Below, piece by piece: positions 6,701 through 50,200 of a stretch of 64,000 bases of DNA (its first letter is position 1; every line of letters begins with the position of its first letter). The notes under the pieces were generated by a model, which searched no databases, was not told the DNA's origin, and worked only from the letters and a program-made list of their open reading frames with translations. Source of the DNA: Ruditapes philippinarum (taxonomy: Eukaryota); NCBI RefSeq assembly GCF_026571515.1, contig NW_026851725.1, positions 1 through 64,000 of the forward strand. The letters run 5' to 3'. The position numbers were made by a program, and so were the translations under genes.

Positions 6701-9700
6701 AAAATGGCAAGGGAAATGTGGTAAAAAAACATTTAAAATTGTATTTTAAAGAAATTTTGACTTAAGTTCCATAACAACAACGTAAAATTTAAACCCTTAT
6801 TATAAAACTAGACTTACCCCAGGTAAGAGATATGCAAACAAGAATAGAAAGTAGGAGAGATGATAAGATCAACCAGAGCCATGTATCACCTACATCAAAA
6901 ATAAATAAGCCCGTCTTATTAATGAAATTTTAGAGTAAATAATGGAAAGTATCATACAAGTATCTGTAAAACACCATTTGAACAAATCTGTAAAGCATAA
7001 ATCAAACTAAACTTATAATAAGATAAATGTACTAGCATGCTTTATTACAATTAAGTTATAGATGAACATAAAGCTGTGAGTAATTGCTTGTCAAATTATT
7101 GTCTACTTATTAAACCTTATGCTCATTCATGAATAAGGTGGATGAAAAATTGTAAGAAAAATTTTTTTTAAAACATTTTAAAAATATATTTAAAATTAAG
7201 AAATTTGGCTTTTGTTTTTGTTATTTGGAATATAAGCTGCAAAAAACACTAAATTAAAAAAGTGGCAATTTTTTAAGTTTTCCGGTAGAGAATCTTCAAA
7301 CCCCTAGGAAACCCAAAGTTTAAAATATGGCATTGGCAACAGACTGCCCTACTTTAGTGCCTGTATCTGATTGGGTTTTTCGCATCAGGGAAAGGGTATA
7401 GATACTGAAATAATAAGAAATGACCATGCCCTATAATTAATTATATCTGCATCAGGAATGGTGTATAGATACTGAAAAATATAGAAAATGACAATCCCTA
7501 TAATACTATTATCTGCATCATGGAATGGGGTATAGATACCCGGGAAAAATATTAAAAACAGACAATGCCCCTTAAAATTACTATTATTCGGTTAAAAGGG
7601 AGGTAATAATAATTCTGATATAATTTTTTGCTAGAGTGTTAAACCTTGTCACATATGATGTGGTTGATGACGAAGCAACTTATATTTAAAGTTTGAAGAA
7701 AATACCCTTAAGAAATAAAGAACTTAATAGTGAAAAAACTTAAAAACTAGAATCAGAAATCTTGAAATTCAGTATATTTGTTGCCAATAGCAACCAGAAT
7801 TTTTCAACATAGGAAGATAAAAAAAAGGATGTGCATAATTTCCATTACTGCCATCTACCCATATGTCAAGTTTCATAAAACATATTTCAGTACTTTTCGT
7901 GTTATCACTGGATCCAGGTTTTGTGTAAAATTTGCCATATTTTTCAGACTATTTGTTGCCATAAGCAAACCAGAATTTTCAACATAGGAAGAAAAGAAAA
8001 AGACGTGCATAATCTCCATACTGCCATCTATCCATATATCAAGTTTCATAAAAATATTTTCAGTACTTTTTGCGTTATCGCGGGATCCAGGTTATGTGTA
8101 AAATTTGCCATATTTTCAGTCTATTTGTTGCCATAGCAACCAGAATTTTCAACATAGGAAGAAAAGAAAAAGACGTGCATAATCTCCATACTGTCATCTA
8201 TCCATATATCAAGTTTCATTAAAATATTTTCAGTACTTTTTGCGTTATCGCGGGATCCAGTTTTGTGGACGGACGGACTGACGGACGGACAGACGGAAGG
8301 ACTGACGGACAGACGGACGGAGGGTAAACCTAAAGTCCCCTCCGGTAAACCGGTAGGGGACTAACAAGCAGGGTCAAAATGGACGGAAACTTGAACCTAC
8401 CTTATAACATCTGAATTTATATAAGAGTAGTAGTATCATAGTCATCACTATGACAACGCCCAGTAAAATCATGGCATTGGCAACAGACTGCCATACTTTA
8501 GTGCCTGTATCTGCATCTGGTTTATCTGCATCATTGGAATGGTGTATAGATACTGAAATAATATAGAACATGACCATGCCCTATAATTACTATTATATCT
8601 GCATCATGGAATGGTGTATAGATACTGAAAATAATATAGAACATGACAATGCCCCTATAATTACTATGGTATATTCTCTGCATCATGGAATGGTGTATAG
8701 ATACTGGAAAAATATATATAGAACATGACAATGCCCCTATAATTACTATTATATCTGCAATCATGGAATGGTGTATAGATACTGAAATAATATAGAACAT
8801 GACAATGCCCCTATAATTACTATCATATCTGCATCATGGAATGGTGTATAGATACTGAAATAATATAGAACATGACAATGCCCCTATAATTACTATTATA
8901 TCTGCATCATGGAATGGTGTATAGATACTGAAATAATATAGAACATGACAATGCCCCTATAAATTACTATATATATCTGCATCATGGAATGGTGTATAGA
9001 TACTGAAATAATATAGAACATGACAATGCCCCTATAATTACTATTATATTCTGCATCATGGAATGGTGTATAGATACTGGAAAAATATATAGAACATGAC
9101 AAATGCCCCCATAAATTACTATTATATCTGCATCATGGAATGGTGTATAGATACTGGAATAATATAGAACATGACAATGCCCCTATAATTACTATCATAT
9201 CTGCATCATGGAATGGTGTATAGATACTGAAATAATATAGAACATGACAATGCCCCTATATTTACTATTATAATCTGCATCATGGAATGGTGTATAGATA
9301 CTGAATAATATAGAAACACGACAATGCCCTATAATTACTATTATATCTGCATCATGGAATGGTGTATAGATACTGAAATAATATAGAACATGACAATGCC
9401 CCTATATTTACTATTATATCTGCATCATGGAATGGTGTATAGATACTGAAATAATATAGAACATGACAATGCCCCTATAATTACTTTTGCAACAGTCATG
9501 CAACTTACCAAAACATTATTGAAACATAAGAATATCTACAGAAAATGCATAACTAAGAAATGTAATTAGATAGTAAATTTAGTATTCCAAGTTTGAAATG
9601 AATATCTTTGATTGTTTGTTTGTTTGTTCGTTTCATTTTACGCCTTTTTCCAACAGTATTTCAGTCATATAGGCGGGTAGTTTCCTAACCATCATTCCTG

Positions 9701-11667
9701 GAGAGTTACACCAGTACTAGACTACCTACCTCCTCGCTAAACTACCAAAGCATCTCCCGGGGATCGAACCCATGCCAGAGAGGTAACTGGATTAGATGTC
9801 ATCGACTCTAACCCCTCGACCACGGAGGCGGTGAATATCTTTGATACTTTTGGAGAAATGAACTAAAGTTTGTTTTGGTTGGTTTTACAGCACACAGACA
9901 CAATTTAGGTGATGTGGTGCTAAAACACGAATGATGATTTTGGCTAACCCTGGGTGTTACAAACTTAAAGCAACATCAGAGGTCAAAAACCATCTCATCT
10001 GCTGGAATTAGGAGATGCCACAGACTCCAGTTATTCAAATCCATATAGTACCTCTTACAATCACACAGGGATAAAACGATGGCTGCAATTCTGATGCCTC
10101 AACCCTTAGAGGCACACCCCTCAGCCACTAGGGGAAGTACTGTTTTCTTGAATTCTTTAACATCAATCAAGAATTTATTTCATCAAAATATAATTTTTTG
10201 GTTTTGTATTTTTAAGTCAAAATGAACATTACCAAAGACAAGAGTCATAATTATTGTGATTATACTAGGCTACTAGCTTTAACTGGCTCTATCTTTGAAA
10301 ACTGGTTCCAGGTTCCATTTTTAAACTGGTTGATTGAGACCAAAGATGCCCATGTATGCTTTATTCCAAACATGGACGGGCAAAGAAAAACTACTCTTGC
10401 CTTATAAATACATCTTTATAAAATATTGTTTGTGGTTAAGTTTTTTTTAAGTTTTCTTTTGTATATTTTTGTGGCAAGTTTTTTTGGGTTTTTTTTAGAT
10501 CACATTAACAGTTCAGTTAATAAGGACACTTATTTTTCTTTATTTCAGTATAAAACATGTACGAGATCTTTTTGACCCGAGATATCTCCGTCAATATAGA
10601 TCATGGGGTACTATACATTTTTTAAATAATACACTAGTTTATCATTTCAGGAGTTAAGCATTTTATATTACTTTATTTATTTTTAAGGCTTAAAAGGCGT
10701 TTATTTTAAACATTTTATTTAACTAGAGATTTTTCTTCACAATTTGTTTATCTTATACACTTACAGATATGCCCCATTTTTCTGTGTATAAAAATGAGAC
10801 AGAGCTGATGGTTGCCACAAACAACTATCATACACAATGTTACAGGTACAAACAACATGATCAACATGTTTTGCCCCATATTGTAACGTTTCCTCTTCTT
10901 CCTCAACAGCCGCCTCTGACTCGCTCCTCTGCTGACGTTCACAGTGACGCTCTCTCCTGGGCATGACGATTGATCGGGAAGTGTTTTCTACCTGTACAAA
11001 CAAAAACAAAATATATTTCAAACCAAGATCAACAATTCTTGCCAATCATCATTTTCTTGCCATGATACAAATTTATATAAAAATCCAAATCCATTTAAGC
11101 ATAAAACCGTCCTGTATTTCTCTTGTAGGCCATGTAAAGGAATGTGAAGGCTGGTAGTTAAAGTGTTTGCTTCTCAACATAATTATGTCTAAGCACTACT
11201 AGGGTCACAACCTTTCTCTTCATAAGACATTCATGATAATTAATATCAGTAGACTCAAAATTGGTTCAAATAAACAGTAGCTGAAATTTTTTTTGAAAAT
11301 GAAAGCTTAAAACTAATTACACTTGGAATGCTGCTTGTACTCTTTCATAACTACTTTCCAAAGTACAGTGCATTTTTATTATATTTATCATATAATTATT
11401 TGATATTAACTTGACATTAATCTTTTCAATCCTTTTCATCATGAACATGAAAACTAATAATATTAAATTGATGGCCTATTATAAAGTTCAGTATAAATAT
11501 ATAAAACAAAATGAATTAAATTAAATGATATACCACAAATTTCATGTTTAACAAGTAAGCTTACAGAAAGATCTCCATTTTCCTCTAATTTGGCATGTGT
11601 TACTTGTCCAGCCATTAGTCGAGTAGACTCGTTTGGTTCTTCTTCGTCACTTTGTAATTTCACTCAT
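745..11667 (-). CDS. PSEN: Presenilin (gamma-secretase catalytic subunit), about 10 coding exons, with many 1-nt indels in this assembly
   Basis: GT-AG exons at 11565-11667 ([17 protein letters not shown]), 10765-10991 ([22 protein letters not shown]), 8401-8552 ([29 protein letters not shown]), 6818-6889 (VIHGWLILSSL), 6302-6526 ([24 protein letters not shown]), 5535-5635 ([15 protein letters not shown]), 4936-5044 and 2875-3123 (loop), 1930-2042 ([24 protein letters not shown]), 745-901 ([22 protein letters not shown]). Both catalytic Asp motifs and PAL are present. Peptides are given after correcting indels by eye. Confidence 0.95.
7600..8366. mobile_element. Non-autonomous Helentron/HINE (pearl-like) element in a presenilin intron
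   Basis: About three tandem copies of a ~172-bp unit (7775-8265), a (GACG/GACA)n microsatellite at 8267-8320 and a terminal hairpin AGTCCCC-TCCGGTAAACCGGTA-GGGGACT at 8334-8362. The left end is approximate. Confidence 0.7.
8524..9484 (-). repeat. 73-bp minisatellite, 13 copies; each unit is intron end + splice acceptor + first ~28 nt of a presenilin exon
   Basis: Minus-strand unit ataatagtaattataggggcattgtcatgttctatattatttcag|TATCTATACACCATTCCATGATGCAGAT. Period 73 (TCATGGAATG at 8761, 8834, 8907). Confidence 0.95.
9613..9831 (-). mobile_element. Full-length tRNA-derived SINE
   Basis: A box TGGTCGAGGGG, B box GGTTCGATCCCC, (CAAA)n tail, 14-bp TSD TGAATATCTTTGAT at 9599-9612 and 9832-9845. 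A second copy lies at 28865. Confidence 0.9.
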
Positions 11668-12149
11668 GAAGAAATGCACATCAATGCATTAGTTTGACCT
11701 GTGTTACTGCAAAAAAAGTTTTGCAGAAATTATGACCATACTTTGTAGAGTACACTTACCATTTTGTCAAGAATTACATACTGCACCTTGGCATATCATT
11801 TTTTCTGAGTCAATCATGATGGGAGGAGTTTATATTCTAATGAAGTGGGCATGGAATGTTGTTATGTTTAGGTAAATTATAAATGTGTAGTTTTCAATAC
11901 ATGTATTTGATATTCATTTGTGGAAAGAAATCAACTACATGTATGTGTATTTTGTAAACTATATATATAAAACTATAATGGAAAAAAAAATTTAAACAGC
12001 TATGCCTTTGTTTTCAATCTTATTTATTGTTAAGATGATGCAACTATATTAAATTATTCTATTATATTATACACAATAATTACGATGAATTGAGTAAGAG
12101 TCAATGTACTTATAATTTGTATATTTATAAGGAAAGAACTTCATATATT

Positions 12150-13620
12150 TACGGTGGCATAAAAGTGACATTTGCAAATGTTTTTTTATTTGTTTTTGAA
12201 ACTTTTTTTTATTTGTTTTTCGCACATTTTTTTTTTTTTTTTTTTTTTTTTGAAATCTTTTTTTTTTTTTTGTTTTTTTGAAAATTTTTTATTTTTTTTG
12301 TTTTTGGAACTTTTTTTTTGTTTTCGCACATCTTTTATTTTTTTTTTTTTGAAACTTTTTTTTTAGTTTTTGTGTAACATATTTTATTTTAGTTTTTCGT
12401 ACATATTTTTTAGCCAATCAAAACAGATACACCTTATAGAAATAGTTTATCTTCCCATAGTATAAATTACGCCATTTCCTTGTTCAAAAATGGATGACAC
12501 ACATAGTTATTTCCCTTAGTATGAAATAAGCCGTTTATGTACCTCGGTATACACGATGGGGTCTCAAATCGAGGAATTTCTACGAAAGCGAGGGGTAGAC
12601 TTTTCAACACTGGCACGAATGGCCACGGATAAGGTAACTTGGATTTTTTTTTTTTTGGTTTTACGTCACACCGACACAGTATAGGTCATTCGGCGACGTT
12701 CCAGCGAAGACCTCAGGTGCCCTTCCATGCATTATTTCAGGCACAACCGTGGACAGCCGTACCGGTATATATATGCTTTTATATATCAGTACTATCTATA
12801 CAAAATTTAAATAATAAGATTGTTTACAAAATTCGATTTATGCACTTTTAAGTCACAAACTGAGTAGCTGCCTTTAATCACTATGTGTGGCTCAACGGTT
12901 TAGATTTACCAAAATTACTATATATAATTAAAATTATCTATAATAATATATGCCTCGGAACAAGTTACCTTGCCCGTTTGTGCCTGAAATAATGCTCGGA
13001 AGGGCACCTGAGGTCTTCGCTGGAACGTCGCCGAATGACCTATACTGTGTCGGTGTGACGTAAAACCAAAAAAAAAAAAAAAATCCAAGTTACCTTATCC
13101 GTGGCTATTCGTGCCAGTGTTGAAGAGTCTACCCCTCGCTTTCGTAGAAATTCCTCCATTTGAGACCCCATCGTGTATACCGAGGTATATTAACGGCTTA
13201 TTTCATACTAAGGGAAGTAACTTTGTGTGTTATCCATTTTTGAACAAGGAAATGGCGTAATTTATACTATGGGAGATAACTTTTTCTATAAGGTGTAACT
13301 GTTTTGATAGGCTTAAAAATATGTACGAAAAACTAAAATAAAATATGTACACCAAAACTAAAAAAAAAAAGTTTCAAAAAAACAAAAAAATAAAAAATGT
13401 GCGAAAAAAAAAAAAAAAAAAAAATTTACAAAAACAAAAAAAAAAAAAAAAAAAATGTGCAAAAAAAAACAAAAAAAAAAAAAGATTCAAAAACAAAAAA
13501 AAATTAAAAAATGTGCGAAAAACAAAAAAAATAATAAAAAATTTGCGAAAAACAAATAAAAAAAAGTTTCGAAAACAAAAAAAATAAAAAATTTGCAAAT
13601 GTCACTTTTATGCCACCGTA
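12150..13620. mobile_element. Non-autonomous foldback DNA transposon with IS3EU-type ends
   Basis: Ends TACGGTGGCATAAAAGTGACATTTGCAAAT and its reverse complement, ~600-bp inverted arms around a ~220-bp spacer, 6-bp TSD TATATT at 12144-12149 and 13621-13626. TAY..RTA termini with a 6-bp TSD are the IS3EU signature. Confidence 0.85.
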
Positions 13621-14394
13621 TATATTACAATTACTTCATGTTGTATCTTTACTACAGATATATTTAAGTACACATGTCCATAAATGATAAAGGTGATGAT
13701 TATTAAACTTTCTGAAGACATTATCTGGTGTTTTCTTTTTACGACTTCATTCTATTTTTTATCTTGATCATTATTTATAATTTTTCTTGAAAAGGAAAAG
13801 TTTATGAAGAAAAGTGAAAAATATAATGCTTAAAAAACGACAACTGGGTTGACCAGAGACAGACTGACTTGGAGCTGGACTGACTAATTTGGGGAAGGGT
13901 TGACCTGGCGCCGCCGAGAAGACTTGCACTCAGTACACATTAATATGGAAAGCAGTCTTGCTCGCTTAAGTTAGCCGTTCTCCAAAATCCCTGCTGCGGA
14001 TAAGGCACATGGCAGGTCAAAGTTAAGTCATTTCAAATACCAGAGATGATTGGTTGATCTGTTGTGACTATCTCGGGAGGAACTTGGTCCTGCAAAGCGT
14101 TATTTTGAAAGAAAATTAGAAATGCTTGAATGTTGTTGTTGTCACCTCCTGTTAACTTGATGTCTTGCAGACCCTGGGGTCTAAACCAAAATTATATAAA
14201 AAGGTTCATTCCCTTTTCTTTATATTAGACATACAAGTTTTACCTCTGAATTACACAATGGGGTCTAATCCAGGAGATTGCCAATTATACAATGATATTT
14301 AATCTTCTTTTTTTTAAGGTAGATCTAGAATTTCATTCTTTTTTAAACAGAAAAATAAATACAGAAATTGAAATTCAATTATAAAAAAAGTTAC

Positions 14395-14846
14395 CTGTAT
14401 AGAAAACGATTAAGAAGAAGGGAGATTACGTCTATTTCTTTTAAAATGAAAACTTTAATGCATCTAAAATGATGGAAAAAAAAGTAAATTACTAATTTTC
14501 CTACTTCCTGCTTTATATGTGTGTTTGATTAGCTATTATAGTTTTATTTATGAAGAAGAACAAATTCATATAAAAGGAAACTATCAATCTTCAAAGGGTA
14601 TTTACGCGCATGTTTATCTAGTCTAAATAGCTGAAATGCAATGTGATTTTGGAAATGTTAAGAAATTGAATAATTAATTGGTCGTGAGTATCAGATGATA
14701 TGATTTAAAACCAGCAGAAATCAATATACAAATATCTTTCATAAAAATCAAACGCATCGTCATCGTTTTTTCTGCCATCTGTAAAAATCGCTTAAAGACG
14801 TGGAAAAAAAGTTTACAGTTTTTTGGGGTTTTTTTTGTAATAGACA
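14395..14846. promoter_or_regulatory. Probable bidirectional promoter shared by PSEN and CCDC167
   Basis: Minus-strand donor CAG|GTAACT at 14394 (candidate PSEN non-coding first exon; matching acceptor at 11699), ETS-like ACTTCCTG near 14503, CpG-containing patch at 14600-14800, CCDC167 ATG at 14847. Confidence 0.5.
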
Positions 14847-16681
14847 ATGCCCACAATTGTGTCACAGGTTATAACTCTTAATAACATTTTTAAACTTTAT
14901 TTCCTACAATTGTCAAGAACTATCTTATACCAAATATTGTTCTTATATGATTTTAACTGTTCAATATTAGCAGGGTCTTTAAAATAGAAATTGTTAGTGA
15001 CAGCATTATCCTAGTATTAAATATGTATATAATCATAAGATGCCTATTCTTTGTCAGGGACCTTTACTTACCAGAGACAGTTTTATCTCGTTCAACAATA
15101 ACTAACCATAACAAATGTAACCCCAAAAAACGTCTTCATTTCCCTTAGGTTTTAATCAGTTAGTTTCTTAAACTTAGAATTTTTTTCTTTGTGTGCATTA
15201 TGTATTATTTTCTCATGATACATTTCAGATTGAAATAGCTGAGCAAGAACTTTTGTCATGTGAGTCAAGATTAGACAAGATTGAAAGAAAAATTAGAATA
15301 TCAGATTTGACAGATATACAACTGTAAGTACATGTATACTAATTACTGTAAGTATACTTAATTATAAATGCTATCCTGTTTTACATTTTCTTCGGAACAT
15401 AAAATAGTAAAGTATTTTGGTGATAAATGACTCTTATGAATTATTACCATAAATGGCATAAATAGTTGGCCTGTCTAACAACACCTTGTTAAAATATATA
15501 TGAATCTACATATTTGCCTCTGAATAGATTTACTTGAGACATTTTGTGTTAAAAATTGTAACACAAGACCCATGGATTTTATCTTTATTAATTTTCCTTT
15601 AAAATCCTAGCTTTTGTATAAGTTCACTAAGTTGTTCCACGATATAAAGGAAAAGTAATACATGTTTACATAAGAAAATTACCCAAGGTTCCTATTGTAT
15701 CACTGAACTGATCACCCATCTGTTCTTGTTTTACTATCAAGCACTGTGAAATGTCAAGGGCATTCTGTCTGACTGTTCTTATTTTCAGTCTATTTTCATT
15801 GTTAAACATTTAATGATATAATAATTTAAAGAACATGAATCATCAACATATATAATATGTAGATTTAGATATTCACTTGTACTTGTATTTTGTTTTTATT
15901 ATTACATAGAAAAGCATTAGAGAAGGAAGAAAAAGAACTTCAAAAGGAGAAAAAGAAGCATGGTAAACATTTTGTGTAACAGTACTGCTTAAAACATTGA
16001 CTGCATAGCAGCAATAATGACTACAGTGTCTTATGTCTTTTGTTATATTAAGTTAATTGACCTAAGAACTAAGCATTGTCTGTAAATGCATAAACTAGTA
16101 TGAGTTCTACCTGCCACACCCTTTTTAAGGTCAAAATGTCAAAGGTTCCAGTCACTAGAACCTATAACAGCAAAACTTGATTCAACTTGTTGAGGGACTT
16201 TGGAAACTTTCATGTAAGGAAGCTATCCAGCAAGCTCACATAATGTGGGTGGTTTTCTCAGGTGGTTTCACCCAGGTGCCCTTCATGCCTGAAATAGTGA
16301 GCAGAAGGGCACCATTCAAGCTGGAAAGTCACCATATGACGGACCTATACTGTGCTGGTGTAGGTAAAACCAAACAAAAGTTCATGGAATCCCCTAAAAC
16401 TTCAAATGAACTGTTTCATATTCAAAGCAGGGCTATTTCAAAATGTAAATTCAGCCTGTTACGTTAAACGTGGATTATCTATCATATAAGGGTTTAAAAT
16501 TTGCATGAAATTCTGCAGTTATTAAATATGTGTCATTCTATAACTAATTACTTCAATGATGTTTTTATTTTCAGAAACTACAATAAGTCAACTTCGGAAA
16601 GAAAATGGAAAAAACACGTTCATCTCTTTCGTTATTCTTGGACTTATATTGATTATATATTATACTTTTTGGAGTTCTTGA
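14847..16681 (+). CDS. CCDC167: Coiled-coil domain-containing protein 167, 91 aa, 4 exons (absent from the ORF track)
   Basis: Exons 14847-14867, 15229-15323, 15910-15962 and 16575-16681 splice in phase to MPTIVSQIEIAEQELLSCESRLDKIERKIRISDLTDIQLKALEKEEKELQKEKKKHETTISQLRKENGKNTFISFVILGLILIIYYTFWSS*. Coiled coil, LRxEN motif and C-terminal TM helix match CCDC167. Confidence 0.88.
16190..16378 (+). mobile_element. Diverged SINE-like fragment (second family)
   Basis: TGCCTGAAATA..GAAGGGCACC..GCTGGAAAGTC..GACCTATACTGTG..GTAAAACCAAACAAA matches the segment in both arms of the 12150-13620 element. Confidence 0.5.
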
Positions 16682-17059
16682 AACTATTGTGTTTATATAT
16701 GTACATGTAACTATATCTTATGTAAATAAATGAAGATTTATACATTTATTTTGACAATTGTTCATATACTGCTTCTTAATATACCATTTAACACATCTTT
16801 CTATAAAAAAAAATTTCATAAACAGTGACAGAAGATGACTTTATTATTATTTTCTTGGTCTAAAAGCTGTTATATTGTAGAATAGAACGGCCTCCCAGCT
16901 TTCATTACACATGTAAACCAATCCGCAAACCGTTATACACATTGGGACATTATACACATTGGTCCCATTCTTTGCAGATTGGCTCATACAATAGCTTGTT
17001 AATATCAGGTACATAGTGTTAGTCTTATTAAGACGGAAATAGGACATTTCGGACCATGG

Positions 17060-26158: not shown

Positions 26159-26384
26159 CACAGTGGTCTGATTCCGTTGCTGTTTGGTTCATGCAGTTCC
26201 TTGGGAATTGGCGCTGGCCTTGGAAACATGGTTGTAAGATACATGTACCTGCATGGTATAGGACTACACGGTGAATTTAGGTGGTTTCTACGTACAATTG
26301 TTATTACGATCAAGAGAAAGCCAAACCAACACGAACCTATTGTTATTCAATGTTAGAAATGAAGCTCAACATACATAGAAATAC

Positions 26385-28864: not shown

Positions 28865-29056
28865 CACCGCCTCCGTGGTCGAGGGGTTAGAGTCGATGAC
28901 CTCTCTGGCGTGTGTTCGATCTCCGGGAGATGCTTTGGTAGTTTAGCATGGAGGAAGGTAGTCTAGTACTGGTGTAACTGTCCAGGAACGATGGTTAGGA
29001 AACTACCCGCCTATATGACTGAAATACTGTTGGGAAAAGGCGTAAAATTAAACAAA
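28865..29056 (+). mobile_element. tRNA-derived SINE, same family as 9613-9831
   Basis: Near-identical to the reverse complement of 9613-9831, with a ~15-bp deletion between the A and B boxes. Confidence 0.85.
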
Positions 29057-32719: not shown

Positions 32720-35700
32720 AATTCGCTACGCTCAAACGTAAATAAATTATTTATCCCATAATAAAGGAATCGAAGGAAGGAAGAACAACAAATACATAAA
32801 TTCACATTTAGGATTTGTTATCTGCATTGCCGTTTATCGAATTCAAAAACAAAGAACGGGTGCAAAGAAACACTTTATAATATTACAAACTGTTCAATGT
32901 TAACATAATATCAATCAATATCAATATAATATGCATTTCATATTTGATTTCAAATTTCAATATCAGATGCCCAGACTCTTTGTAACTGATAATCGTTTGT
33001 TTAAATCATCTTTGACATAACCGTCCTTGCTCTGTCCACTACGCCACCGGCCATGTCTTTAGAAATAGTCTATCAGAAATTCCTAAATTGGCAGCCGCTG
33101 TGACTCCCCCTGATCTTAAACTATTGTAATCCAAAATGAGATTTATCTAATCCGAATTGAAGAAAACATATTCCGAATGATCTCCCTTGAAATCTCGTAT
33201 AAGATAAAGAAGAGTCTGTGCATCTTAACTTATAACACTGTTTAGATTTACAGTAAGAGAGTGAACGAAATAAACTCATTTGAATCATCGTTAATTTGAG
33301 CACATTTGAGATATAATTTAAGCAATGATACTGGACATGTTCTATAAACCAGTTTTTGCTATTACACTCCAGTTTTATCCTTCCTATAAATGTCAGTTTT
33401 TACTCCTCTCCTTCATGAAAATTCCTACTATGATCGTCCACTGACCACATAATACTCAGAACGTTCTCTAATAGTAAAGTTAATTCTAGAAAATCTAAAG
33501 AATCCCTGATATCCAAGTACACAATGTAATACTTCTGAACCTATACAATCTCCCATTTGCATATCGCTTGCCTACTACCATAGACACAATTTATGTAACA
33601 CTTTCCGGTGTATTGGTTCTTTTTTTAGACACTAGATGATCCAAAGAATCCTGTGAGCCTGCCTGCCGAAACCTGACCTGTAGTTTAAAATTTGAATGAC
33701 ATGGGTTAATAGAACATCCGGCTAAATCATGGGCCACTTTAACTCCCGTAAAAGGGTCGTAAAACTAGACGTTGAATTAATTTTGAATTATAGAATCAAA
33801 TACAGTTAAAAATCGGCTGTCTAAGACTGCGTAAGAGTCTAGATTTGGTATTCGGACGCCCGATGACACCACGCCACCCCCCCTGACGGATCTTTGGTAC
33901 TTTTTGCTCCGTACTTGACAAGCCTCAGAGATCTCTCAAAAAACGTTCCGGCCAACCAAGGCACGCAGCCGGACGTACAATTTCGATTTTTTGCTCCAAA
34001 TGTATCTATTCCAATATTGAAGCTTACTAGATCTGTAAGAACACGTACAAGAAAAAATAATAATATTCTTACGACCTCATTAAACTCGTACCATAATATA
34101 GTTCTCCAACACTAATGACAGTCTAACATACAACCCCTAACTACTAAGAACAAAGTAACATAATTTGAAAACAGACTCCATAAGAAATAAACCGTTCATC
34201 ACGCGTTTTTTTTTTACAAGTCGATTCGTTATTCTGTAAAAAGATTAGAAAATATTACAATTTGCCTTCACAGCGGAAAATCAACCACAGTCAACCGTTA
34301 TTATGACCACTTAATTCAGGAAGTAAAATAGAAAATTAACCTATCAAATAATAATGTCGCACATCGACGCTTTCTATGACCTATCACTGGCGTAACTACA
34401 AATTTATAATTTTTTTTTTAAATTTAATCTCGCCAATCGGCGCTTGCCACTGCCCAACGGCTGGCATACCACAAAAAGTTTTATTTAAAAATCTCGCCAA
34501 TCGGCGCTTGCCACTGCCAAACGGCTGCGTACCACATGGAATTTTAAATTAATAAATCCGCCAATCGGCGCTTTCTGCACTGCCAAACGGCTGGGTACCA
34601 CATAATTTCTAATTTAATAAATTCGCCAATCGCGCTTGCCACTGCCAAACGGCTGGCGTATCACATAATTTCTAATTTAATAATCTCGCGCAATCGGCGC
34701 TTGCACTTGCCAAATGGCTGCGTACACATTATTTCTAATTTAATAAACTCGCTGCAATCGCGCTTGCCCTGCACCAACGGCTGGCGTACCACACAATTTC
34801 TAATTTATTGAATTTCGTCCCGTTTTTTTTTTTTTTTTTTTTTTTTTAAATAAACGAACTAGCTCGCTATACATATACAAAACATAAGCAACATAAGAGC
34901 GGTCATATTTCAGTGTGTACACACTGTGATATGATTTTACAAAAAGATTCAACAACCTATTAAATAAAAAAGCTTTTAACATAGCTTTCCAATATTTAAA
35001 CAGAACAATCTTAATCGTATAGCTAAAACTTTACTGTTGAAACTTTCAGATCAAAAATAGTTTGTCATATTTAAGTATTGTACAAAAATGTACTGTTTGT
35101 GGAAAAAACTCAAAAATACTCAAGAATGTATATTTCGAGTGTATAAATGCTATTACCAAACAACATTGGCCAGAACGGATGCAGATGGCCAATGAGGTAC
35201 AATTAAAAACTCCCCGTGCTTGGCCAAAGCCACCAAATGATTGATAGCTTTAGGCACAAAAGTACAGGGGAACCAGCAGTTATTTCCCCTGACCAATCAA
35301 CTGAAAATGCATCGACGTTGTTCTGTTCCCGGAACCAGAACGAAAAATTAAATCTTTTAACTTTACAATTGTAATGATTTGGCAAATCGATCTATCGAAA
35401 AAAGCGCCCACATATATCCAAAAAATTGAAAAATTCTGTAGTTTACGCCCAATCATCAACATCAAAAAGTTACTTATTTTATCTGCAAATTAATTTTGCG
35501 CCCTAGGAACCCAGTCTATATGTAGAACGCTATACCTTTTTTAATACAAAAAATCAAAATGTTAACAGCGAGGAAATGTAACTTGGTTTCATGCTCCCTC
35601 CGTTTGATAATTTTTACACAATTTTGATTATCGGTGCACATCGACTGATTTTTACCAAAATTAACAATACAAAACTTTGTAGAGCAAAATATATAGCAGA

Positions 35701-38685: not shown

Positions 38686-38928
38686 AATTGAGCCGTGTCA
38701 CGACAAAACCAACATAATGGGTTTGCGACCAGCATGGATCCAGACCAGCCTGCGCATCCGCGCAGTCTGATCAGGATCCATGCTGTTCGATATCAATATT
38801 TCTCCTTGCTATAGGGTTTGTAAGCGAACAGCATGGATCCTGATCAGACTGCGCGGATGCGCAGGCTGGTCTGGATCCATGCTGGTCGCAAACCCATTAT
38901 GTTGGTTTTGTCAAGACACGGCTCAATT
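38686..38928. mobile_element. Palindromic MITE
   Basis: ~110-bp near-perfect inverted arms (AATTGAGCCGTGTC..GGATCCATGCTGTTCG / CGAACAGCATGGATCC..GACACGGCTCAATT) around a ~35-bp spacer. Confidence 0.85.
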
Positions 38929-40464
38929 TATTTTTTCAATTCACACTATTCACTTTATAAATGCACATTTCACTGATGTCTGTGTTTGTCACTTTAAAAC
39001 TTAAGTTGTTTAACATAATATTGCATTGTAAATGAGAAGATTTACGTGCCCAGACGTTTAAGTTTATGCGTGTATTAACAATGAATCTTGAAAACGTTCG
39101 TACCTGGAAAAAGCACACGAATGGGTACCTGATGAAATCTTCTGGCAGTAAAGCTAAACAGTACATAAGTGAAAATGTACATACATGTATACATCTTGTA
39201 TTTTGAAAATATTCGATCATTCAACTTGTTGTAATTAAACATCGCGCAAATATACAAAAATTGACATTTGACACTTTTAATCACGAAAATTGAGAATAAC
39301 GTTTCAAAATGAAAAATAATCCTACAAAACAACAGCAACAACAACAAAAATAAACAAACAAAACAGCTACCAAAGGACTTTTAAATAGTATGCTACACAA
39401 ATTTTAACGCATCTAGAGCTATATCTCGCTTAAATGACAACAATAAAACCGAAGATACTAATCTACAGAAACTGGTTTTTCAAGATTCTGTTTTATGTAC
39501 ATGTACATTATACATTTTAATAGAAATCGAGATTTTTCTTAAAGAAACACTGGATACAAACATCTTTTAATAACCAGTTAAGCATGGACGGCGTGTCTGC
39601 ATACCAAGACATATTACAAAAAATAGCCTTAGGATAATCGACACTTTGTTCCCGTTTACAAATGGATGTTATAAAATTATTCTATTTATTTGTGCCATGT
39701 TTGAATGGTTTCGGCTAAAATAACGTACAAAGAAACGAAACAACGTACGTATATCCTTTTACATGTGCTGATTTTCATATAGGTAAGACTATTTAACTAA
39801 CTATTTAACTACGGTAATAATGTTGTATTTCTTGTAAATTGAAAAATTAGCTTAGTAATATACAAAATAGTTAATTATATCGCAATAATAGTTAATATGT
39901 TGGTTAGAATAATGATATAAACAACTCTGAGTAAAAAACGATGTTTCGTAATGGCAAAATTATAACATTTTGAAAAGATTATAACATTGGAAGAGTTATG
40001 CAAGGAATGGTTGAATAATTAAAACATCTAATCAAACAGCCTTTTCTGCGTAAGTATAATAAAGAAGAATTCAATAAAAATGCAAAATTGATGAGTCGCT
40101 GGCTATCCTACTTTCTCGAACATGTAGTTTTTTTTCTTTGGCTAAATCTAAGAACAACAATTCAGCACCTTTTTCTTGAATATTAATACATGTATAGAAT
40201 AGACATTTTGAATAGATTGTGCACTGTATCGTTTCATATATCATTGCTTTAATTAAAGCCGTGCATGCATGTACCCGTCAGGTTGCGATGAATAATCTTC
40301 TTTAAAGACCCATATTAGCGAAATGGTTCACTCAAGTGGCCATTGAAGACTTGAGAACTTTGAGCTTAGTTATCGACATTTTTGTTTTTAAATTTATCAT
40401 ATAAATCAAAACACCCTGAAAATGCTAACCTCTATCATTAATTTACACACAGTTAAGGCAAAAC

Positions 40465-42141
40465 ATGGGGAGAGAACAGAATAAACAGTCATCAAAGCGT
40501 CTACACAGAGGTACGAAGATAGTGCCAGAGGTTGTGAGCGAGAGGAGATCTTTGATCAACAGACAATCGCTAACGAGATTGCTTCAGATGTCGATGATAT
40601 CAAACGAGTTGACTAGACTACAGATTTACCAGGGTGACCAATGTATTTTGGCAGAAAGTAAGTTTCTGGTAAATGCCAACTTTTATTCCGCCTCTTCTGG
40701 TTCTTAGTTGCAATATTATGGGGCGTTTTAAACATGTCTGTATTTCAACACATTTTATTGATACAATTTCAAGTACAAACTGTACATATATAATAGTCAT
40801 CAGCTTTATACGATGGTCTAAGATTGAAGGTATCATTTTCATTGCAGACTGGCGAGAATTGTATGACATCGTTTCGGACCTCCATTATTCTGCTTTCTAC
40901 GGCGACCTCGTGTCCGTGAAACGAATTGTCAAAGAAAGACGGGGCAAATCAGATTCGACAGTGGAAGTCGACATTCCAACAGAAGATGGTCCAAAACTAC
41001 TTAAAGAATTGACACCGAATATCGGAGAGAATTACGGAAAAGAGAATTACGCCGGGTTTTTCTTGAAAACTACACCCCTTATGATGGCGGCTCAACAAGG
41101 CCGCTTGTCCGTGGTAAAATATCTCGTTGAATACTGCAAAGCAGATGTTAATGCCAATGACTCCTTAGGACTAACACCATTATCATTGGCATGCTCGTTC
41201 AACCGGCTAGAGGTTGCAAAATATCTTCTTACAAAGCACGCACTAATAAACGTGACAGAAAACAGGAACGGAATGACCCCGATAATTCTAGCAAGCGTAA
41301 ACAACCATAGTGACATGTGCAGGGTTTTACTGGGTCGTCATGCAAAAGTGAATATTGTTGATAAGTTTGGTAGGCAAGCCATTCATTACGCGGCATGGAA
41401 TTACAACAAGAAAGCGGTAACTGCCCTGTATCACCATGACAACCGGAGCATAAACGTACAGGACAACGACAGAAATACTCCGCTTCATTTACTGGTGTCT
41501 GATGAAAATGTTGATGTAGAGCTTAACAGTTTCACCGCAAAAACTGATCAACATTTACTGAGCGCTACAGCACAATTAGCAGAGTATGATGCCACTACGG
41601 CAGATATTAAAAGAGAAACAATCGCGGAACTAATAGAGTCGGGGAGCAATACGAATGCTTAGTACAAATGCTAGAGCTCGGGGCAAGTGTCACTATACGT
41701 AACAATATGGGCCAGGCACCATTGCATGTGCTTTGCAGCAGGCTGACTCCTGTAAAATACTCTAATGGATATTTGTATATCGATGAACCTACCACGACTC
41801 AGACCCTGTTGATAATGCACATGATTCTATATAAAAGAGGATGTTCGGGACATGCTCCAGATTTTCAAGGAAGGACACCATTTACTATTAGTGTTGATAG
41901 AATAAATTGGCTATCTGCCAAGATTCTTGGTGGGGACACAGCAATACGGTCAGAGGTGACAGTGGACTGGTTTGCCAAACTTGAAGATGCTGTTTCCATG
42001 TTCGGCTGGGGTCATTTGTTTGAGCATAAACACGTGATGTCAGAAATAGAATACATGTCGTCTGCTGTTTTGTCGAGACAGAAAAATGAAACGAAGGCAC
42101 AAAAAATGGCTAAACGAATCATGCACATATCTTACAAATGA
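40465..42141 (+). CDS. Ankyrin-repeat protein, 2 exons, reading frame broken near 41650-41662 (pseudogene or assembly error)
   Basis: Exon 1 40465-40657 (A|gtaagt) joins in phase to the acceptor ttgcag at 40847. Ankyrin motifs TPLMMAAQQG, GLTPLSLAC, GMTPIILAS, GRQAIHYAA, RNTPLHLLV, then GQAPLHVLC and GRTPF in the -1 frame after TAG 41660-62. Confidence 0.8.
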
Positions 42142-45100
42142 AATGAAATTATCTCAAGTACACTTTGTAAAAAACAAGTTATAAATATGATACAATGTCA
42201 TGTTACAGGTGTCAGAAATCTAGACTGCGTAAATCTCTGGTTTGAGAAAATATTGGGAGAAAAAATTGAGTAAAACGGTAGAAAAATAGGAAGTGAATAT
42301 CATCAGTCGAATTAAGTCGTATTTTTTTATTGTTTCAGCATTTATGGAACTTAAAAAATTTACACATATAAATAACCATTTTATACATGTGAAGAAATAT
42401 TGTTTATGCAATAAATATCTCGCACATTTGTCAATGTATTCCAATGCACATCAGTAAATAAATGAAGGTCATATGTGGAAATAGAGCAATAAGAATATCG
42501 CTGAAGACGATGGATTATCCGAAATCTGCACATTTGGCGATGTGTTCGATGCAAAGTCAATAAGGGCTGTGAGAGAAAAAACGTACAAATCTAATTTAAG
42601 CACCAGTGACCTGGACTCCAGTAATTCTTAACTCTACCCAAATTTAGAGGACAACCCAGCAAGGTAGCATTATGGTACATGGGCACTGAACTTTCTTTTA
42701 CTGGTCTCTAAAGTTTAAAAATCAAATTCCTTCAATACTTTGGACCAGCATATTATAAAGGGAGATAATAAAAAAAAGTGATATTGAGTTATGATCCTTA
42801 CGCACTTTTTTTCTGAACTTTAGGTCCACCTTGGTCCAATTAGGTCAAGGCAACTTCAACTATATTAGCAAAGGTGGTCTGCCGGGGTGCTTTCCAGCTT
42901 TTCTTCTGTCCAAGAAATCAACACAGCAAAATAAATAATGTAAACTTACAAACTTATGAAAATGTTTAATAATAAATATCATTAATAATCACAAGAACAA
43001 AAATATATATATAAATTCTACCATTCAAACAAATTTATGTTCTGTTTATTTAATATATATCTAGCAAATTAACTATTTGATGAAACTCTTTCAGAGATCA
43101 TTTTTGCCAATCATTTAAACTAGGGAATAAATATGTACACAAATACTAAGAGCATCACTTAACAATCTGTCTTCAGGTTATATAACTCTTAACATACCTT
43201 AACATAATAAAAGAAACTATTTAACCCTTGACTTCTGAATTTCCCAAGTGGACCTGTCCAAAATCTATTTTGAAATGGTCGATGAATCAAATCAATAAAA
43301 TTTTGGAAACTGGTCAACCAATAGCTCTCGGATGAAAGTGACTTTGTAACTTCGTTTAACACATTTTAAGGGTAAGCAAATTTGTTACAAATAATGAATT
43401 TTTCAGAGGAAATGATTCAAAAATGTTTGTAAATAAAGATAATAAAATCATCTGTTTTCAAAATTTCCCAATTTTTTTCATTTATAAATGCAAATTTACA
43501 ATGACACACAATGATATAGCATTACATATCTTATTTACTAAGCAATTACTTAAACAAAGAATTATTCAATACAAAACAGTAACAATATAAAGTCATCCTT
43601 TTGACCATTTTTTTTAATCCAATTCAAAATAACAATAACATTACATCATACTTTGACATCAATATCCATCAAACAAAGCAAAATAGCAATAAAAAATAAA
43701 TACTGATAATAAACAAAAGTAGTTGAAAAAAGTCTGTGCTTTAAGCACTCATGAACAATCATTTTTTTATTTGCAAAGATTTTTTATTTTTTTATGGGAA
43801 CCAGAATTACTGAGTACCAGAATCAAAATTCAAAATCATCCTGCGAAATTTATGCAATGGAATTGCCCTACTCTGAATTTTGAACAATCCCTTCAAAGAT
43901 AACAGGATTTCAGTTTAATAATACAAGATTGCCAATTTGTCAAAAAATACAGCCGTCACAATTGCCATTCACATTATAATGAACATTTACATTAATGACT
44001 AATACTCCTTTTTATTTTCATATCTGACCTTTGACATCTGCATGTGACCTTGGCCAAAAATTGGGATAAACCTGAATTTCACAAAATAGTACAATGATTG
44101 TTATACAAGAATTTAAAGAAGAGCACCACATGCCACATTAAAGCTAGTCTGTTACAATAACTACTTCTGACAAAAAAAAACAATCCAATAAAAAAATCCC
44201 TTTCAGAATTATGCCCCTTATCTAACATAAAACCATTTAACATGAAATCTGAATAAAAGGAAACACGAGGTGTCAATTTTATAAAATTTTCATGTTAAGC
44301 CTAAAGATGAATCTGAGTTTCATCATATACTATCATAATTTGTTCTTTGAGTTCATCAATCAACAACATTATTGCATTTTTCTTTTACAGTAAAGTTTTA
44401 AGTAAAACAAACACTGTATGTTGTAAATGATATGTGGCAACAATCCAGCTGTACTGTAGCAGGAAAACCTCAAGTCCACTCAAATTATTTCAGGCACAAA
44501 CAGGCCCTTAGTAGACCATCATATCTTCTGTAAACAAGGTGGATAGCTTCCTCACATGAAAGTTTTTTTAAGGGATTCAAACCCGCAAAGGTTGGAGGCA
44601 AGTGATTTCAAATCAGTCACTTTAACCACTTGGCTGAGGCCCCAAAAATATTGCATTTAACCCATAACAAAAAAAAAAGTTAAATACATTAACCGAAGAT
44701 GCAATAATGAAACTACATTTAACCAAAGTAAAAACACTGAATGCATTTAACCTACAATTAAACAATGTATATTGCTTTGAACTTTTCCTAAAAGAACTTA
44801 AATTCATTGAATCCAAGATAAAAATAATCAGACTAATATTGTAATGAACCTAAGACAGAAACAACTTAAATTCCATTATAAAACTGTACTTGTATTTAAC
44901 ATGTTAAACACAACTTAAATTACAGTAAACATGTTATTTATTAGCAACAGCTTAAACTGCATTAATAATATCATAGAAACAACTTAAATACTAATAGATA
45001 TACTCAACAAATGTGTTTTTTTTCCAAGGATATCCTCCAGTACAAACTTTTACCGTTACCGTTCACAATAGATAAGTCAACCTCTTGCGCTTAATTTCGA

Positions 45101-46610
45101 AGCTGTAACAGTTAAAGTTTGTTTGTACCACCTGAATATCTGGGAAAAACCCAACATATTCTTTATTCAAGAGTAAATCTATTTGATCAGTGTTGAGAAT
45201 ATATATTACTGACTGAAAGAGTTTGGCACTGATTATTTCAATAAATATTGAACTTTATTCATGATACAATTTAAATCTTTCTCTGCAACAGAAATACAAA
45301 CGGCCAGTCAGATTCATGGAAATTTTACACTTCCTCAAAACTTGCTTTCAATCAAAATTCTCTAAATCTTACATTGACAAGATGCCTAAAATATACTGTA
45401 AAAACAAGATAATTTGCGTGAGATCAAAATTTTATGAACTCAACATTTGAGACTATATAGCAAGGTTAAATGGTAGATACTTTAATAATATATCAACATT
45501 TGCAATTTCAATTTTCAAAATTTATTCCCTTGCAAAAATGTCTGATTTTAAAGCAATTTGTTTTCATTTATTATTTTTTGAGCTTTGCCATTGGTTTTAT
45601 TTCTGTCAAAGTTATCTTTGCCTTTAGAAAAAAGAAAGCAACACAAAAAAAAACAAGAAAACCTCTGTCAACAATTATATTACCTGCCTAAGGCTTTGAA
45701 TAAGTCAATAATTAAAGCAGTCAGTAATAGAACTTATTGTGTTATATTTTCATCTTTTAATTATTATAAATTATGCATACTAGTATATATGAAGCATAAC
45801 TGTCATCAACGAAATTTTAAAACAAGATATATCATGTCTATTTTGCAATAATTTCTATGTTGGAAATAGGATGACAATGTTTTGAGTACATGGTTATCAA
45901 TTATGCAAACATATTTTCTTTCAAAAATAATTTTCATTTCCAATATTTCACATACAAAAACATATTAGATTCTAACTTATCGGTGAAAGAAAAACATTCA
46001 TTCTTATTAAGTGTCAGACAGAAGCCCGGTGTAAAAAAGACTGATAATACTTTACTTAAGAGAAACTAAAAGAAACATTTATAATAAAATAAAAAAAAAA
46101 AATCTATGTCTAAATGCAGAATATCTTATAAACTGGATTTCAATTTCAAAAGACTTAATATCACATATTTCACAGATGTTCTTGTAATATCATGAATAAA
46201 TTACATGTACAAGCTTTTAGTACTTTTATTTGAGAGGTTCTAAAAAATTTAAATCATTACATATCAGTTTTATATTTTATTAATAAAAAGGTTCTGATAT
46301 TCAAAAGACCATATGCTCTGGTCTTCTGAGAAATAATAGCCAAGTGACAGAACTCTTGGAACTGTTATAAATAAATCAAGACTTTGCACAAAGTCGAGAC
46401 CTACAATTGCTAAATGTGTTCAATATTAACCAAAATCATTTATTACAAAATATAACTATATTTCTATGGCACAATCAGTTTTTTATTAAAAAATATAAAT
46501 AAAAAAAAGAAGAAGTCACAATTCAATTATAAGTTAGTAGTACATGTATGCTTTAAAAATTAATGTATTTATCTTAAGTGAACAGAGCTACATGTATAAA
46601 GAGAAAACAT

Positions 46611-46838
46611 TACTGTGAATTCACTTAATTTTGTGGGCAAGAAATTTTGTGGTTTTGTCACAATGAACATTTTCGTGGGTTCTTAAATTTGTATACTGCT
46701 TTTTTTTAAAAATAATCTTACAGCAGACAAAATGAAATTTCTTTGGATCTTAAATTTGTGGATTGACATATCCACAAAAAGACCAATCCACTAAAACCAT
46801 GAATTTTCACCACGAATATTAATGATAATTTTGCAGTA
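46611..46838. mobile_element. Old Tc1/mariner-type MITE
   Basis: Degenerate TIRs TACTGTGAATTCACTTAATTTTGTGG and (rc) TACTGCAAAATTATCATTAATATTCGTGG. Confidence 0.45.
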
Positions 46839-47250
46839 CATTCTTTTAATATTCATCATACTGACATTGTATATTAGACTTGTCTGCTTTTAAAAAATAG
46901 AACAGTCTATCGTTCTTATATTAGGGTTGGGAAGGGTAGGGGAGGGTAGGGGAGGGGTGAGCTTGGGGATTTCGCATTTAAAATGCTAAATTTGAGCAGG
47001 CAACAATATAAACACGTGTTTAACAGCACGGAAGAGCAGAGTGGTCTGGGCCATATTTTGGAAGCAATGAAATGTCATTTTAGCTATTTCAGGAAGTTAC
47101 AGTTAGTTATCGAAGTTGTAGAATCTAAGCATTTTTACTTGAACTTTGATTTAGCATGGTGATTTTTAATCTACACTTTTTTTTAGAGCATTAGGCAATG
47201 GAAGAGAGAGTTATAGTCTCTAGTCTATCTAGATATATCAGAATCTGTTG

Positions 47251-50200
47251 CTATGTATCTTGACTCATGGACATTGCTATAGCCTGCTTTAACATCTCCT
47301 CTTCTGACAACTCTGCAAGGAAAGAAAATTTAATGATTATAAGGTATTTGTGAATATAATCTAGAGAAACAAAAAAGTTATTTTACTTCTTAAAATTGTT
47401 AACTTTTTAAATACTATAGGGTTGTAAAGCCTAATCTAGGGTTTTTAGAAATCAGTCAAGAAATTGTTGGCATCATGACATGAATCATAGCAAAGTACAT
47501 GTATCTAATTTGAAAGAAAGACTAGTGAATAAAACTAGTGCATCAGGTGGGAACTTAATTTAAAAAAAAAATTCTAATGTTTAGAAACTTTTTTGTTGTG
47601 TATAACTCTTACTTATTGGTCAAGATGTATTACTAATAATGTCTACTAAACATGCCATGATCTGTATCAAATCAGTCAATGATTGTTCAGCATTATAGAC
47701 GTGTTGCTTTTTAAAAAGGAAACATAACGATTTTATTCTATGAACAGACAATATAAATATCTGTTGAACTAAACATCACAACACAATAAACAAACATGCT
47801 GTGAAAACTGTTCAGAAATGACTATGAGAAAACTTATGACATACAGAAGAATACATTGTAATATAGTTTTACACCCTTTGACAATCGTAACGAAGCAAGT
47901 TTAAACAATGACATATGGGAATATACACACTGCATTTGTATAATTATAATGATGGTTTATTTAAGTCACCTGGAACCATTCAAAGGTTCCCTGATCATTA
48001 CTCATTTCTTACCAGGCTTTACATGATATGAATTAAACATTCATACATACATAAAACACACCTATTTCTTGGTAATATGTAAGCACACTAAAAGGCTATG
48101 TCTTTTTCAAAAGGTAAAGGCTATATAGTGACAAGCCTGATTTGCTTATAGAGGAATACCTCAGGTGTCACTCTGATCATTGATTCAGGCACCAAATGCA
48201 CATAAGTCGAACCACTGACTTTCCTCATACTAGCTTAATAGCTTCATCGTATGACAGAATCAAAAGCCCGTGACAGGATTAGAGAGAGAGAGACAGGGAG
48301 ACATGTGACTCACAATCAATAACCTTAACCATACCATCATCATGTTAAATATATGCCCCACATATGATACTGGATAAAAAGTTTGCAATCCCCATTTTAA
48401 TTAAACATATCTCCATGTGATGATGAGAGCATATCTTACAAAGTTATTTCTTTACCTGAAACTTCAGTCTCTGTATTTGTTCCATTCACTGTCACATCTG
48501 ATGGGTTATCACAGGAACAATTCTCTTTGGTATCCTTGTCTTGATTTTGTTCACTAGAGTCTGTCTGACTGCCTAGTTTACTTAAAAAAGCTAGTCTTTT
48601 TTGTCTCATTTCATCTGCATCTGGCTTTTCAACTTCTGCTAGTTCATGTGACTGATCTGTGGTGCCACCTAGCTTATAACCTGATGTACTCTCCTCTTGA
48701 TTACTTTTATCAGTATTTGTGCTAGGTTTATCTTGTGCAGTTGAAGTGGACGGACCTGAACTAGATTCCCCAGAATGACATGCGGTCTCAATTCTGCTAA
48801 CAGACTCCTCTATATAACCTGTATATAAAATAATCATCAATTTTGTGTGAACGTATTTTTAAACAAATGCTGTCAGTAGGATAATATGCTCCACTTTCAT
48901 CACAGCATGAATAATGTATTAACAGAAAAGGACGGTTTCATTGAAATTTCATAGCTATAAGCTTGGAAATTGACATACAATTATGATCCAAAAAACTTAA
49001 ATATTAGTTTATCTGTTTAAATGGGTATGGTCAATTTTTAACTAAAAACTGGTTAGAGAATTCAATTACCTGTCAGGTTAGTATTTGACAAAAAGTAAAA
49101 AAAAAGTTTTAAATTGATTCTAAATATTACCTTAGTTTTTTTTTATATAAAGATATGACAATTTTTTTTCCGATATGATCAAGGATGGTACAGCCGCTCT
49201 AACAGAAAATAGTTGTTCCTTATTCAAATATGTATTGTAATACTACACCAAAATATGAACAAAATGTCATATCTCAATTGTCATAAAGAAAAATATTAGT
49301 GATTATGACAAAACCTGTGGTAGTAGTAACTTAATTCATGTTTTACACATCATTTCAATTTTACTTAATCCAGAGGATAATCAATACATATAATACAGAC
49401 ATTCAAAGCCAAAATAAATCACTTGTTACCTAGCAACATAAAACAATAATAATGATAGAGCATTAGAATACTTTTCTTGACTGCTTTATCACTTGTAATA
49501 ACACATATTATGTGATATTTTACAATATAGCAAAAAGTGTTACCATGAGCAAACATTTTTATTGATTTTGGTACTAAATGGACTCATTTGCTGAAAACTA
49601 TCAACTTTATTCTATGCACTTTGCCATCCTTTTAATTTTTAAGCAATTTTTAGAGAAATTTTTGCACTTCTCAAACACTTTGTAAGTGAGTAACAAAATT
49701 CAAGGACTTTAAAAGACTTTTTTATCCACTTTTCAAGAAACTGTCTCAATTTTAAGCCCTTCTTAAAATTGTAGGCACTGAGGAATGTGATAGTATCAGA
49801 TTTATGAATTGTTTGTCTAATTACCTTCCATACTCATCTGAAATTGTTTATCTAATTACATTCCATTCTCATCTGTAATTGTTTATCTAATTACCTTCCA
49901 TACTCATCTGTAATTGTTTATCTAATTACCTTCCATACTCATCTGTAATTGTTTATCTAATTACCTTCCATACTCATCTGTAATTGTTTATCTAATTACC
50001 TTCCATACTCATCTGTAATTGTTTATCTAATTACCATCCATACTCATCTGTAAAATTATTGAAATAATTACCTTCCATACTCATCTGCAGAGCTCGTTGT
50101 AAGGAGACATCATCTGATTCTATCATACTTTTGCTTTCCTGCAGAGCCTTTTCTACCTCTGGGTCTTCCTCCCGCCCTCCAGTTCCACCTGAAGCCCCGC

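Follow-up and report, generated by a model that had tools for sequence, protein, structure and literature searches.

Why should the long tandem arrays of a genomic segment lie across the splice junctions of its genes? This question is raised by the first 64,000 nucleotides of contig NW_026851725.1 (C212) of Ruditapes philippinarum, the Manila clam, which were analysed at full length and are called the window here. The contig belongs to a 1.4-Gb assembly of 15,874 contigs with ~31% G+C. In the window, one array covers the acceptor junction of an exon of a presenilin gene (PSEN), and another covers the donor junction of an exon of an ataxin-3 gene (ATXN3). A preliminary description of this DNA had claimed that both arrays straddle functional splice sites and that they are the only long arrays outside transposons. 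The first claim was borne out by Tandem Repeats Finder (TRF), by listings of the units, by presenilin transcripts, and by the reading frame of ataxin-3. The second was largely correct, and the other arrays of the window are dispersed, transposon-borne, or of low complexity. In our judgment, both arrays are probably "mirage"-type minisatellites, that is, tandem duplications that arose in situ and whose founding unit fell across an exon-intron junction by chance.

The presenilin array occupies positions 8523-9485 on the minus strand (TRF: period 73, 12.9 copies, 93% matches). Its 73-bp unit consists of ~44 nt from the 3′ end of the intron, including the polypyrimidine tract and CAG, and ~29 nt from the start of the exon. 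Listing unit by unit, we found 13 copies of ...TTTCAG|TATCTATACACCATTCC in the window, namely 12 decoy acceptors and the authentic one, and this sequence is retained in all copies of the array. The exon-like starts of the decoys lie at 9445, 9372, 9300, 9226, 9153, 9076, 9002, 8927, 8854, 8781, 8703, and 8624 (minus strand). The authentic exon, at 8401-8552 on the same strand, was identified by matches to PF01080, by tblastn with RefSeq and transcript proteins, and by translation. Its acceptor AG is at 8554-8553, its donor GT is at 8400-8399, and the encoded peptide ends with RCYK. The window copy of this exon has one extra base (CCAATGATG vs CCATGATG), which is most likely a consensus error. 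The upstream exon is located at 10765-10991 (minus strand), has the donor ...GCATATCT|GTAAGT, and is frameshifted by indel noise in the window. The array lies in the 2.2-kb intron between this donor and the authentic acceptor.

A contig comparison showed that another contig (C8994, 32,272 nt) is an allelic haplotig for window positions 1 to ~17,000, in reverse orientation. There were 271 one-base gaps against 202 mismatches in 7.4 kb between the two. In addition, presenilin exons that are frameshifted in the window (e.g., 10765-10991 and 6303-6554) are intact on the haplotig; exons were searched one at a time, by reference. Judged by these differences, the window contig is a noisy long-read consensus, so that exact copy numbers and single-base differences among the copies are unreliable. 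The frameshifts point to poor polishing and not to a pseudogene. Junction arrays can mislead gene callers; here, the RefSeq presenilin models were placed on the short haplotig with its intact exons instead of on the main contig.

The haplotig array has 11 acceptor copies (10 decoys and the authentic one) vs 13 in the window. Furthermore, the higher-order patterns differ, with an alternation of variant units every 146 bp on the haplotig vs a five-unit periodicity of ~372 bp in the window. Mobile elements were also seen at this locus. One haplotig unit contains a 372-bp miniature inverted-repeat transposable element (MITE; C8994:13172-13543) whose inverted ends measure ~17 nt and whose target duplication, ATAGAACA, is 8 bp long, and it is without counterpart in the window allele. 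Meanwhile, a tRNA-like short interspersed element (SINE) with a GGTTCGATCCC-type box stands beside the window array at ~9592-9830 (minus strand), with the direct repeat GAATATCTTTGA on both sides, and it is missing from the haplotig.

The presenilin junction could be fixed on the haplotig, where ...GCATATCT|GTAAGT is joined to cag|T ATC TAT ACA CCA TTC CAT GAT GCA GAT. The resulting peptide, ...QKNGAYL|IYTPFHDAD, is the same as in the RefSeq and transcript proteins, and this part of the protein is the same in the Mercenaria orthologue and in every transcript. The authentic acceptor was used in all five presenilin coding sequences, that is, two RefSeq models and three distinct 497-aa proteins from Logan. 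The Logan contigs are only 1.5-2.3 kb long and thus represent spliced transcripts. On the haplotig, all of the decoys (10/10) would run into a stop, mostly ~31 codons on (range 31-67). When the mRNA-derived presenilin proteins were compared with Mercenaria and across all transcripts, no new intron or exon set by the duplicated sites was found.

The ataxin-3 array occupies positions 49807-50087 on the minus strand (TRF: period 35, 8.0 copies, 94% matches). Its 35-bp unit consists of the last 16 nt of an exon that encodes ubiquitin-interaction motifs (UIMs) (CAGATGAGTATGGAAG) and 19 nt from the start of the intron (GTAATTAG...). There are eight donor copies, seven decoys plus the authentic one, and GT is kept in all of them. 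The G of the authentic donor is at 50071 (minus strand), as set by the reading frame and a split Gly codon. The donor listing placed the decoys, each following an exon-like end, at 50035, 50000, 49965, 49930, 49895, 49860, and 49825 on the same strand. Compared with the authentic copy, 5/7 decoys are identical over the 16 exon nucleotides and 7/7 over the first seven intron nucleotides (GTAATTA). The greatest divergence in the array is found in the intron part of the authentic first unit.

The exon next to this array (50072-50332, minus strand) encodes the end of the Josephin domain and UIM1-UIM2, as indicated by the UIM match, the PDB match, and the frame. It starts with GYSIFIVIGDLSECEADQLL, and GYSIF(I/V)V.GDL..CEADQLL matches residues 159-182 of human ataxin-3 (PDB 1YZB, 2AGA). 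It ends in the two UIMs, ...DDVSLQRALQMSME (...LQRALQMSME, with G| into the next exon). In addition, a domain search found Josephin-domain exons upstream of the array on the minus strand. Thus, the identity of the gene follows from the Josephin matches, the residue match to the two PDB entries, and the UIM match. The next exon (48439-48818, minus strand) begins GT TAT ATA GAG..., which reads G-YIEESVSRIE.... Only the authentic donor gives an in-frame join to the exon at 48818 (a G|GT Gly codon), and translation from each of the decoys (7/7) gives MEGNYFNNFTDEYGW and then meets a stop, either at once or six codons on. Homology, the frame, and a Gly codon shared with the next exon place the donor, which is probably the one in use, while the decoys would be silent. 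A protein search with the last ataxin-3 exon matched only genomic open reading frame (ORF) calls and no transcripts. An intron of this gene also holds a Tc1/mariner transposase ORF that looks intact (51903-52931, plus strand; 342 aa, with HTH_Tnp_Tc3_2 and DDE_3 domains).

A DNA search of the 1.4-Gb assembly found the presenilin array only at its own locus and on the allelic haplotig, and the ataxin-3 unit only at its own locus. A transposon-derived satellite taken up as an exon was rejected as an origin, as each unit is confined to its own locus and Mercenaria conserves the start of the exon.

The preliminary description knew of no named system of this kind. However, such systems have been reported. 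Minisatellites called "mirages", which are tandem repeats across exon-intron boundaries at 5′ and 3′ sides, were described in Adh3, troponin C (TnC), globin, and PGBD5 genes of amphioxus. They are length-polymorphic between haplotypes and leave regular splicing undisturbed. New introns were proposed to arise from them, and how they are generated was called unclear (PMC3087553, PMC3902484). The suggestion in the preliminary description that the arrays may be raw material for new introns or microexons is one that had been published for mirages. In the amphioxus globin mirages, the boundary units diverge while the inner ones are homogenised (PMC3087553). The amphioxus cases, with BflGb6 and BflGb9 as the globins, resemble the clam arrays in that the unit spans the boundary, the copies lie in the intron beside the authentic exon, many copies keep AG or GT, and homogenised inner units stand between diverged boundary units. 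Furthermore, like the amphioxus mirages, the clam presenilin array differs in copy number between haplotypes, and its authentic acceptor is the one used in the five coding sequences. The clam copy numbers (8-22) are higher than the 3-6 reported for the amphioxus globin mirages, and somatic instability was shown for the Adh3 mirage, whereas the clam arrays were read from assembled sequence. The host is also a venerid bivalve, which belongs to a different phylum from amphioxus, and our literature search found no report of mirages in bivalves. The clam arrays are thus a new taxon for a repeat kind that has already been described.

For the donor type, there is also a human precedent. In intron 7 (IVS7) of F7, the first element of a 37-bp variable-number tandem repeat (VNTR) spans the donor of exon 7, the pseudo-sites after this donor have the identical sequence, and 50 constructs showed exclusive use of the most upstream donor (PMC1557585). 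The ataxin-3 array is built in the same way, with a first element on the donor junction followed by near-identical pseudo-donors, and the unit lengths are close (35 vs 37 bp). However, donor use in F7 was shown with constructs, whereas the ataxin-3 array is known from genomic sequence. Another related case is the Rogers model of intron gain by tandem duplication of an AG|GT segment (PMC3087553), in which the duplication makes extra splice sites as in the clam. Unlike in this model, no new intron or exon has formed in the clam, where the presenilin coding sequence and intron positions match those of other bivalve presenilins.

If the arrays are ordinary minisatellites of this kind, they provide identical competing sites in natural series, with 12 acceptors in one and 7 donors in the other, for testing how the authentic site is chosen. 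To our knowledge, no acceptor-type array has been studied in experiments of the kind done on the F7 donor.

How might such arrays have arisen? We infer both their founding mechanism and their neutrality. A short local duplication between microhomologies, by replication slippage or template switching, may have come first. Then, the array would grow and shrink via slippage and unequal exchange, often by several units at once. We found that the presenilin unit is bounded by the hexamer TGCAGA, which occurs in the intron before the first unit (GTTGCAGAAG|TAATTA, on the haplotig) and at exon nucleotides 22-27. Short direct repeats at these two places suggest slippage or template switching from one to the other. 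The differences between haplotypes and the diverged edge units are ordinary minisatellite turnover, with boundary units escaping homogenisation.

As the preliminary description stated, both arrays reach only into the intron. Their coding share is ~29 nt in presenilin and 16 nt in ataxin-3. This polarity may reflect a filter and not a target. The copy that is contiguous with the rest of the exon would keep the gene intact, so that surviving arrays should lie wholly on the intron side, and the authentic site should be the last acceptor copy or the first donor copy. The decoys would stay silent because they have only 16-29 nt of exon, without the rest of the exon and its partner site. Furthermore, neighbouring copies, at 39 or 22 nt apart, would be too close to splice together. 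The minimum workable length of an intron exceeds 22-39 nt. The inclusion of adjacent units as microexons of 13 or 34 nt as their normal fate was rejected on the same ground, since the spacers (22 and 39 nt) are below that length.

Is the position of these arrays at junctions more than chance? The preliminary description had called chance unattractive. However, a founding duplication of length u has u start positions at which it will span a given junction, and with the introns taken without their arrays, this geometry alone gives the presenilin intron a chance of ~13% and the ataxin-3 intron one of ~6%. In exon-dense myosin genes (~126 conserved coding segments in 74 kb), the corresponding chance is ~16%.

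We also examined an exon-centred sample of 60 loci, with exons found by Pfam genome-wide, which covered ~185 kb and was picked regardless of repeats. The usable myosin sample was 74 kb, and the 30 kinase loci were mostly intronless domain hits. TRF and inspection gave ~8 in-situ non-coding arrays with a unit of at least 16 nt, of which one verified and one possible array lie at a junction. The verified one is a locus-specific donor array in a myosin gene (L077 409-1045, C9155:157097-157733; coordinates in this sample are given without strand) with ~22 copies of 29 bp. The donor is GGCTTG|GTATGTGA, and the unit is CTTG|GTGAACTAATTAATATATCAGATGA (CTTG|GTGAAC...), so the exon share is just 4 nt. 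The exon was confirmed by Myosin_head positions 436-494, and divergence is greater in the first and last units than in the inner ones. Deeper in the same intron, there is a second, older array (73-78%). The possible case is a locus-specific acceptor array at L051 15-194 (C9722:46978-47396) with at least nine copies of 45 bp. It ends with ...GATACAG| directly before an ORF with the myosin-like motif ...LLELSEDWLKQALTQK (...ALTQK). The exon status of this ORF was unconfirmed by Pfam or by a PDB sequence search, and the array was tallied as possible only. Meanwhile, a strong in-situ intronic array off the junction (L044 2198-3329 and L045 794-1395; 13-23 copies of 40 bp) has its end ~100 nt upstream of a kinase-domain exon's acceptor, and the two loci are paralogous or allelic. 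No array was found at any exon edge listed by Pfam in the sampled loci, a test that was underpowered.

Thus, the recurrence put forward in the preliminary description gained a further verified donor array in the myosin gene, but an excess at junctions is unproven. With 1-2 of ~8 arrays at junctions vs a geometric expectation of 5-16%, chance is not rejected. In the ~185-kb sample, enrichment over chance is neither established nor refuted. We think it rather unlikely that junction-anchored arrays are truly over-represented among the large in-situ minisatellites of the Manila clam genome. If they are, there could be several causes. First, selection may protect the exon-side copy, which would then be a permanent seed for re-expansion. 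Second, exon edges may be hot spots of breaks or template switches. Third, clustered binding sites for U1 or U2AF by the exon may be mildly favoured. In that case, new splice sites, microexons, and introns in highly polymorphic invertebrate genomes would have a general source in such arrays, one that has so far gone unquantified.

Several points weigh against an origin by chance duplication followed by neutral turnover. First, among the strong locus-specific non-coding arrays of all the DNA analysed here, three verified and one possible are junctional, vs one that is not (L044/L045). Second, the slippage between TGCAGA copies leaves 6 nt of the presenilin unit (TATAAT) unaccounted for. Third, the ends of the ataxin-3 array share a microhomology of only 2-3 nt, CA(G). 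Fourth, the splice evidence for presenilin consists of gene models and assembled transcripts and is compatible with minor use of the decoys. Finally, the ataxin-3 array is known from one noisy contig, and its donor was placed by homology and frame only.

The alternative that fares best is a duplication process targeted to junctions, by R-loop repair, RNA-templated repair, or a break hot spot at the exon edge, which would seed arrays at splice sites. It would explain why both locus-specific arrays of the window lie at junctions and why 74 kb of myosin loci, picked regardless of repeats, yielded two more, one of them verified and the other possible. However, the splice junction is internal to the unit in all three verified arrays, and the exon share varies (29, 16, and 4 nt), which speaks against any process with a cut at the junction, spliced, lariat, and RNA-templated intermediates among them. 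In addition, the units are contiguous genomic exon plus intron, and no spliced or lariat ends, poly(A), or marks of reverse transcription were seen in them. The ends of the presenilin unit show a plain microhomology of 6 nt, and the count in the unbiased sample, set against the geometric chances given above, does not reject chance. The junction-targeted or RNA-templated process suggested in the preliminary description is therefore not indicated, and we consider it very unlikely.

Another alternative, also raised there, is a rheostat in which some transcripts use decoys, gain a premature stop, and are degraded by nonsense-mediated decay, with the length of the array setting expression. AG or GT is intact in 12/12 presenilin and 7/7 ataxin-3 decoys, a premature stop follows every decoy, and presenilin copy number is unequal between haplotypes, all of which would fit such a rheostat. 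However, whole units are 93-97% alike and not just the splice signals, and young, homogenised arrays should keep their decoy sites intact in any case. Minisatellites also normally vary in copy number. Furthermore, the authentic site is the one used in every presenilin transcript available, experiments on F7 showed no competition from its pseudo-sites (PMC1557585), and the amphioxus mirages leave splicing undisturbed (PMC3087553, PMC3902484). Thus, we found no support for the rheostat, and it seems highly improbable. The last alternative, that the arrays or their size come from mis-assembled noisy long reads, could draw on the indel noise and frameshifted exons of the window contig, on the single contig with the ataxin-3 array, and on two scans of metagenome contigs by exact pattern, which gave no match to the ataxin-3 or presenilin unit and hence no second copy, but it is scarcely credible, as the presenilin array stands on two independently assembled contigs with differing copy numbers and insertions, the arrays (281 and 963 bp) are far below long-read length, and like arrays occur at other loci.

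Chance mirage-type duplication remains the reading that we prefer for the two arrays, and it does not extend to the third junction that had been proposed, a one-step duplication at a donor of CCDC167. The motif pair in question lies at 15321-15363 (plus strand), where a second ACTGTAAGTA..TATACT.AATT motif follows the donor of exon 2 (15229-15323). Both haplotypes have this weak repeat of two copies, which takes in 3 nt of exon, and TRF did not report it at a score of 30. We found 15 comparable small local repeats outside the TRF arrays in the window vs ~5 in shuffles. That one of these 15 repeats falls on a junction is unremarkable, the more so since GTAAGT is common in introns, and chance can account for it.

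Other repeats of the window are of different kinds. An old partial copy of the presenilin exon (to approximately exon nucleotide 82) with about three array units lies at 7330-7584 (minus strand; ~86%, diverged). It is located in the next presenilin intron, within a 1.06-kb insertion (7302-8363) that the haplotig does not have. Next to it is an element at 7600-8363 with 2.9 copies of a 170-bp repeat, a (GGAC)n tract, and a terminal hairpin, and the 170-bp array reported at 7768-8267 belongs to this element. It looks like a satellite-bearing element of the Helitron/Helentron type, and it may have carried or captured the presenilin fragment. The same architecture of repeats plus a tetranucleotide tract recurs at two unrelated loci (L041 and L064). 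In addition, the array of six 64-bp units at 34430-34814 is part of a dispersed repeat family with copies on at least 15 other contigs at 76-92% identity, and the remaining arrays lie in transposon nests or are low-complexity A/T runs. Finally, an ankyrin-repeat open frame of 329 aa (40673-41662, plus strand) lies in the part of the window that is densest in G+C.

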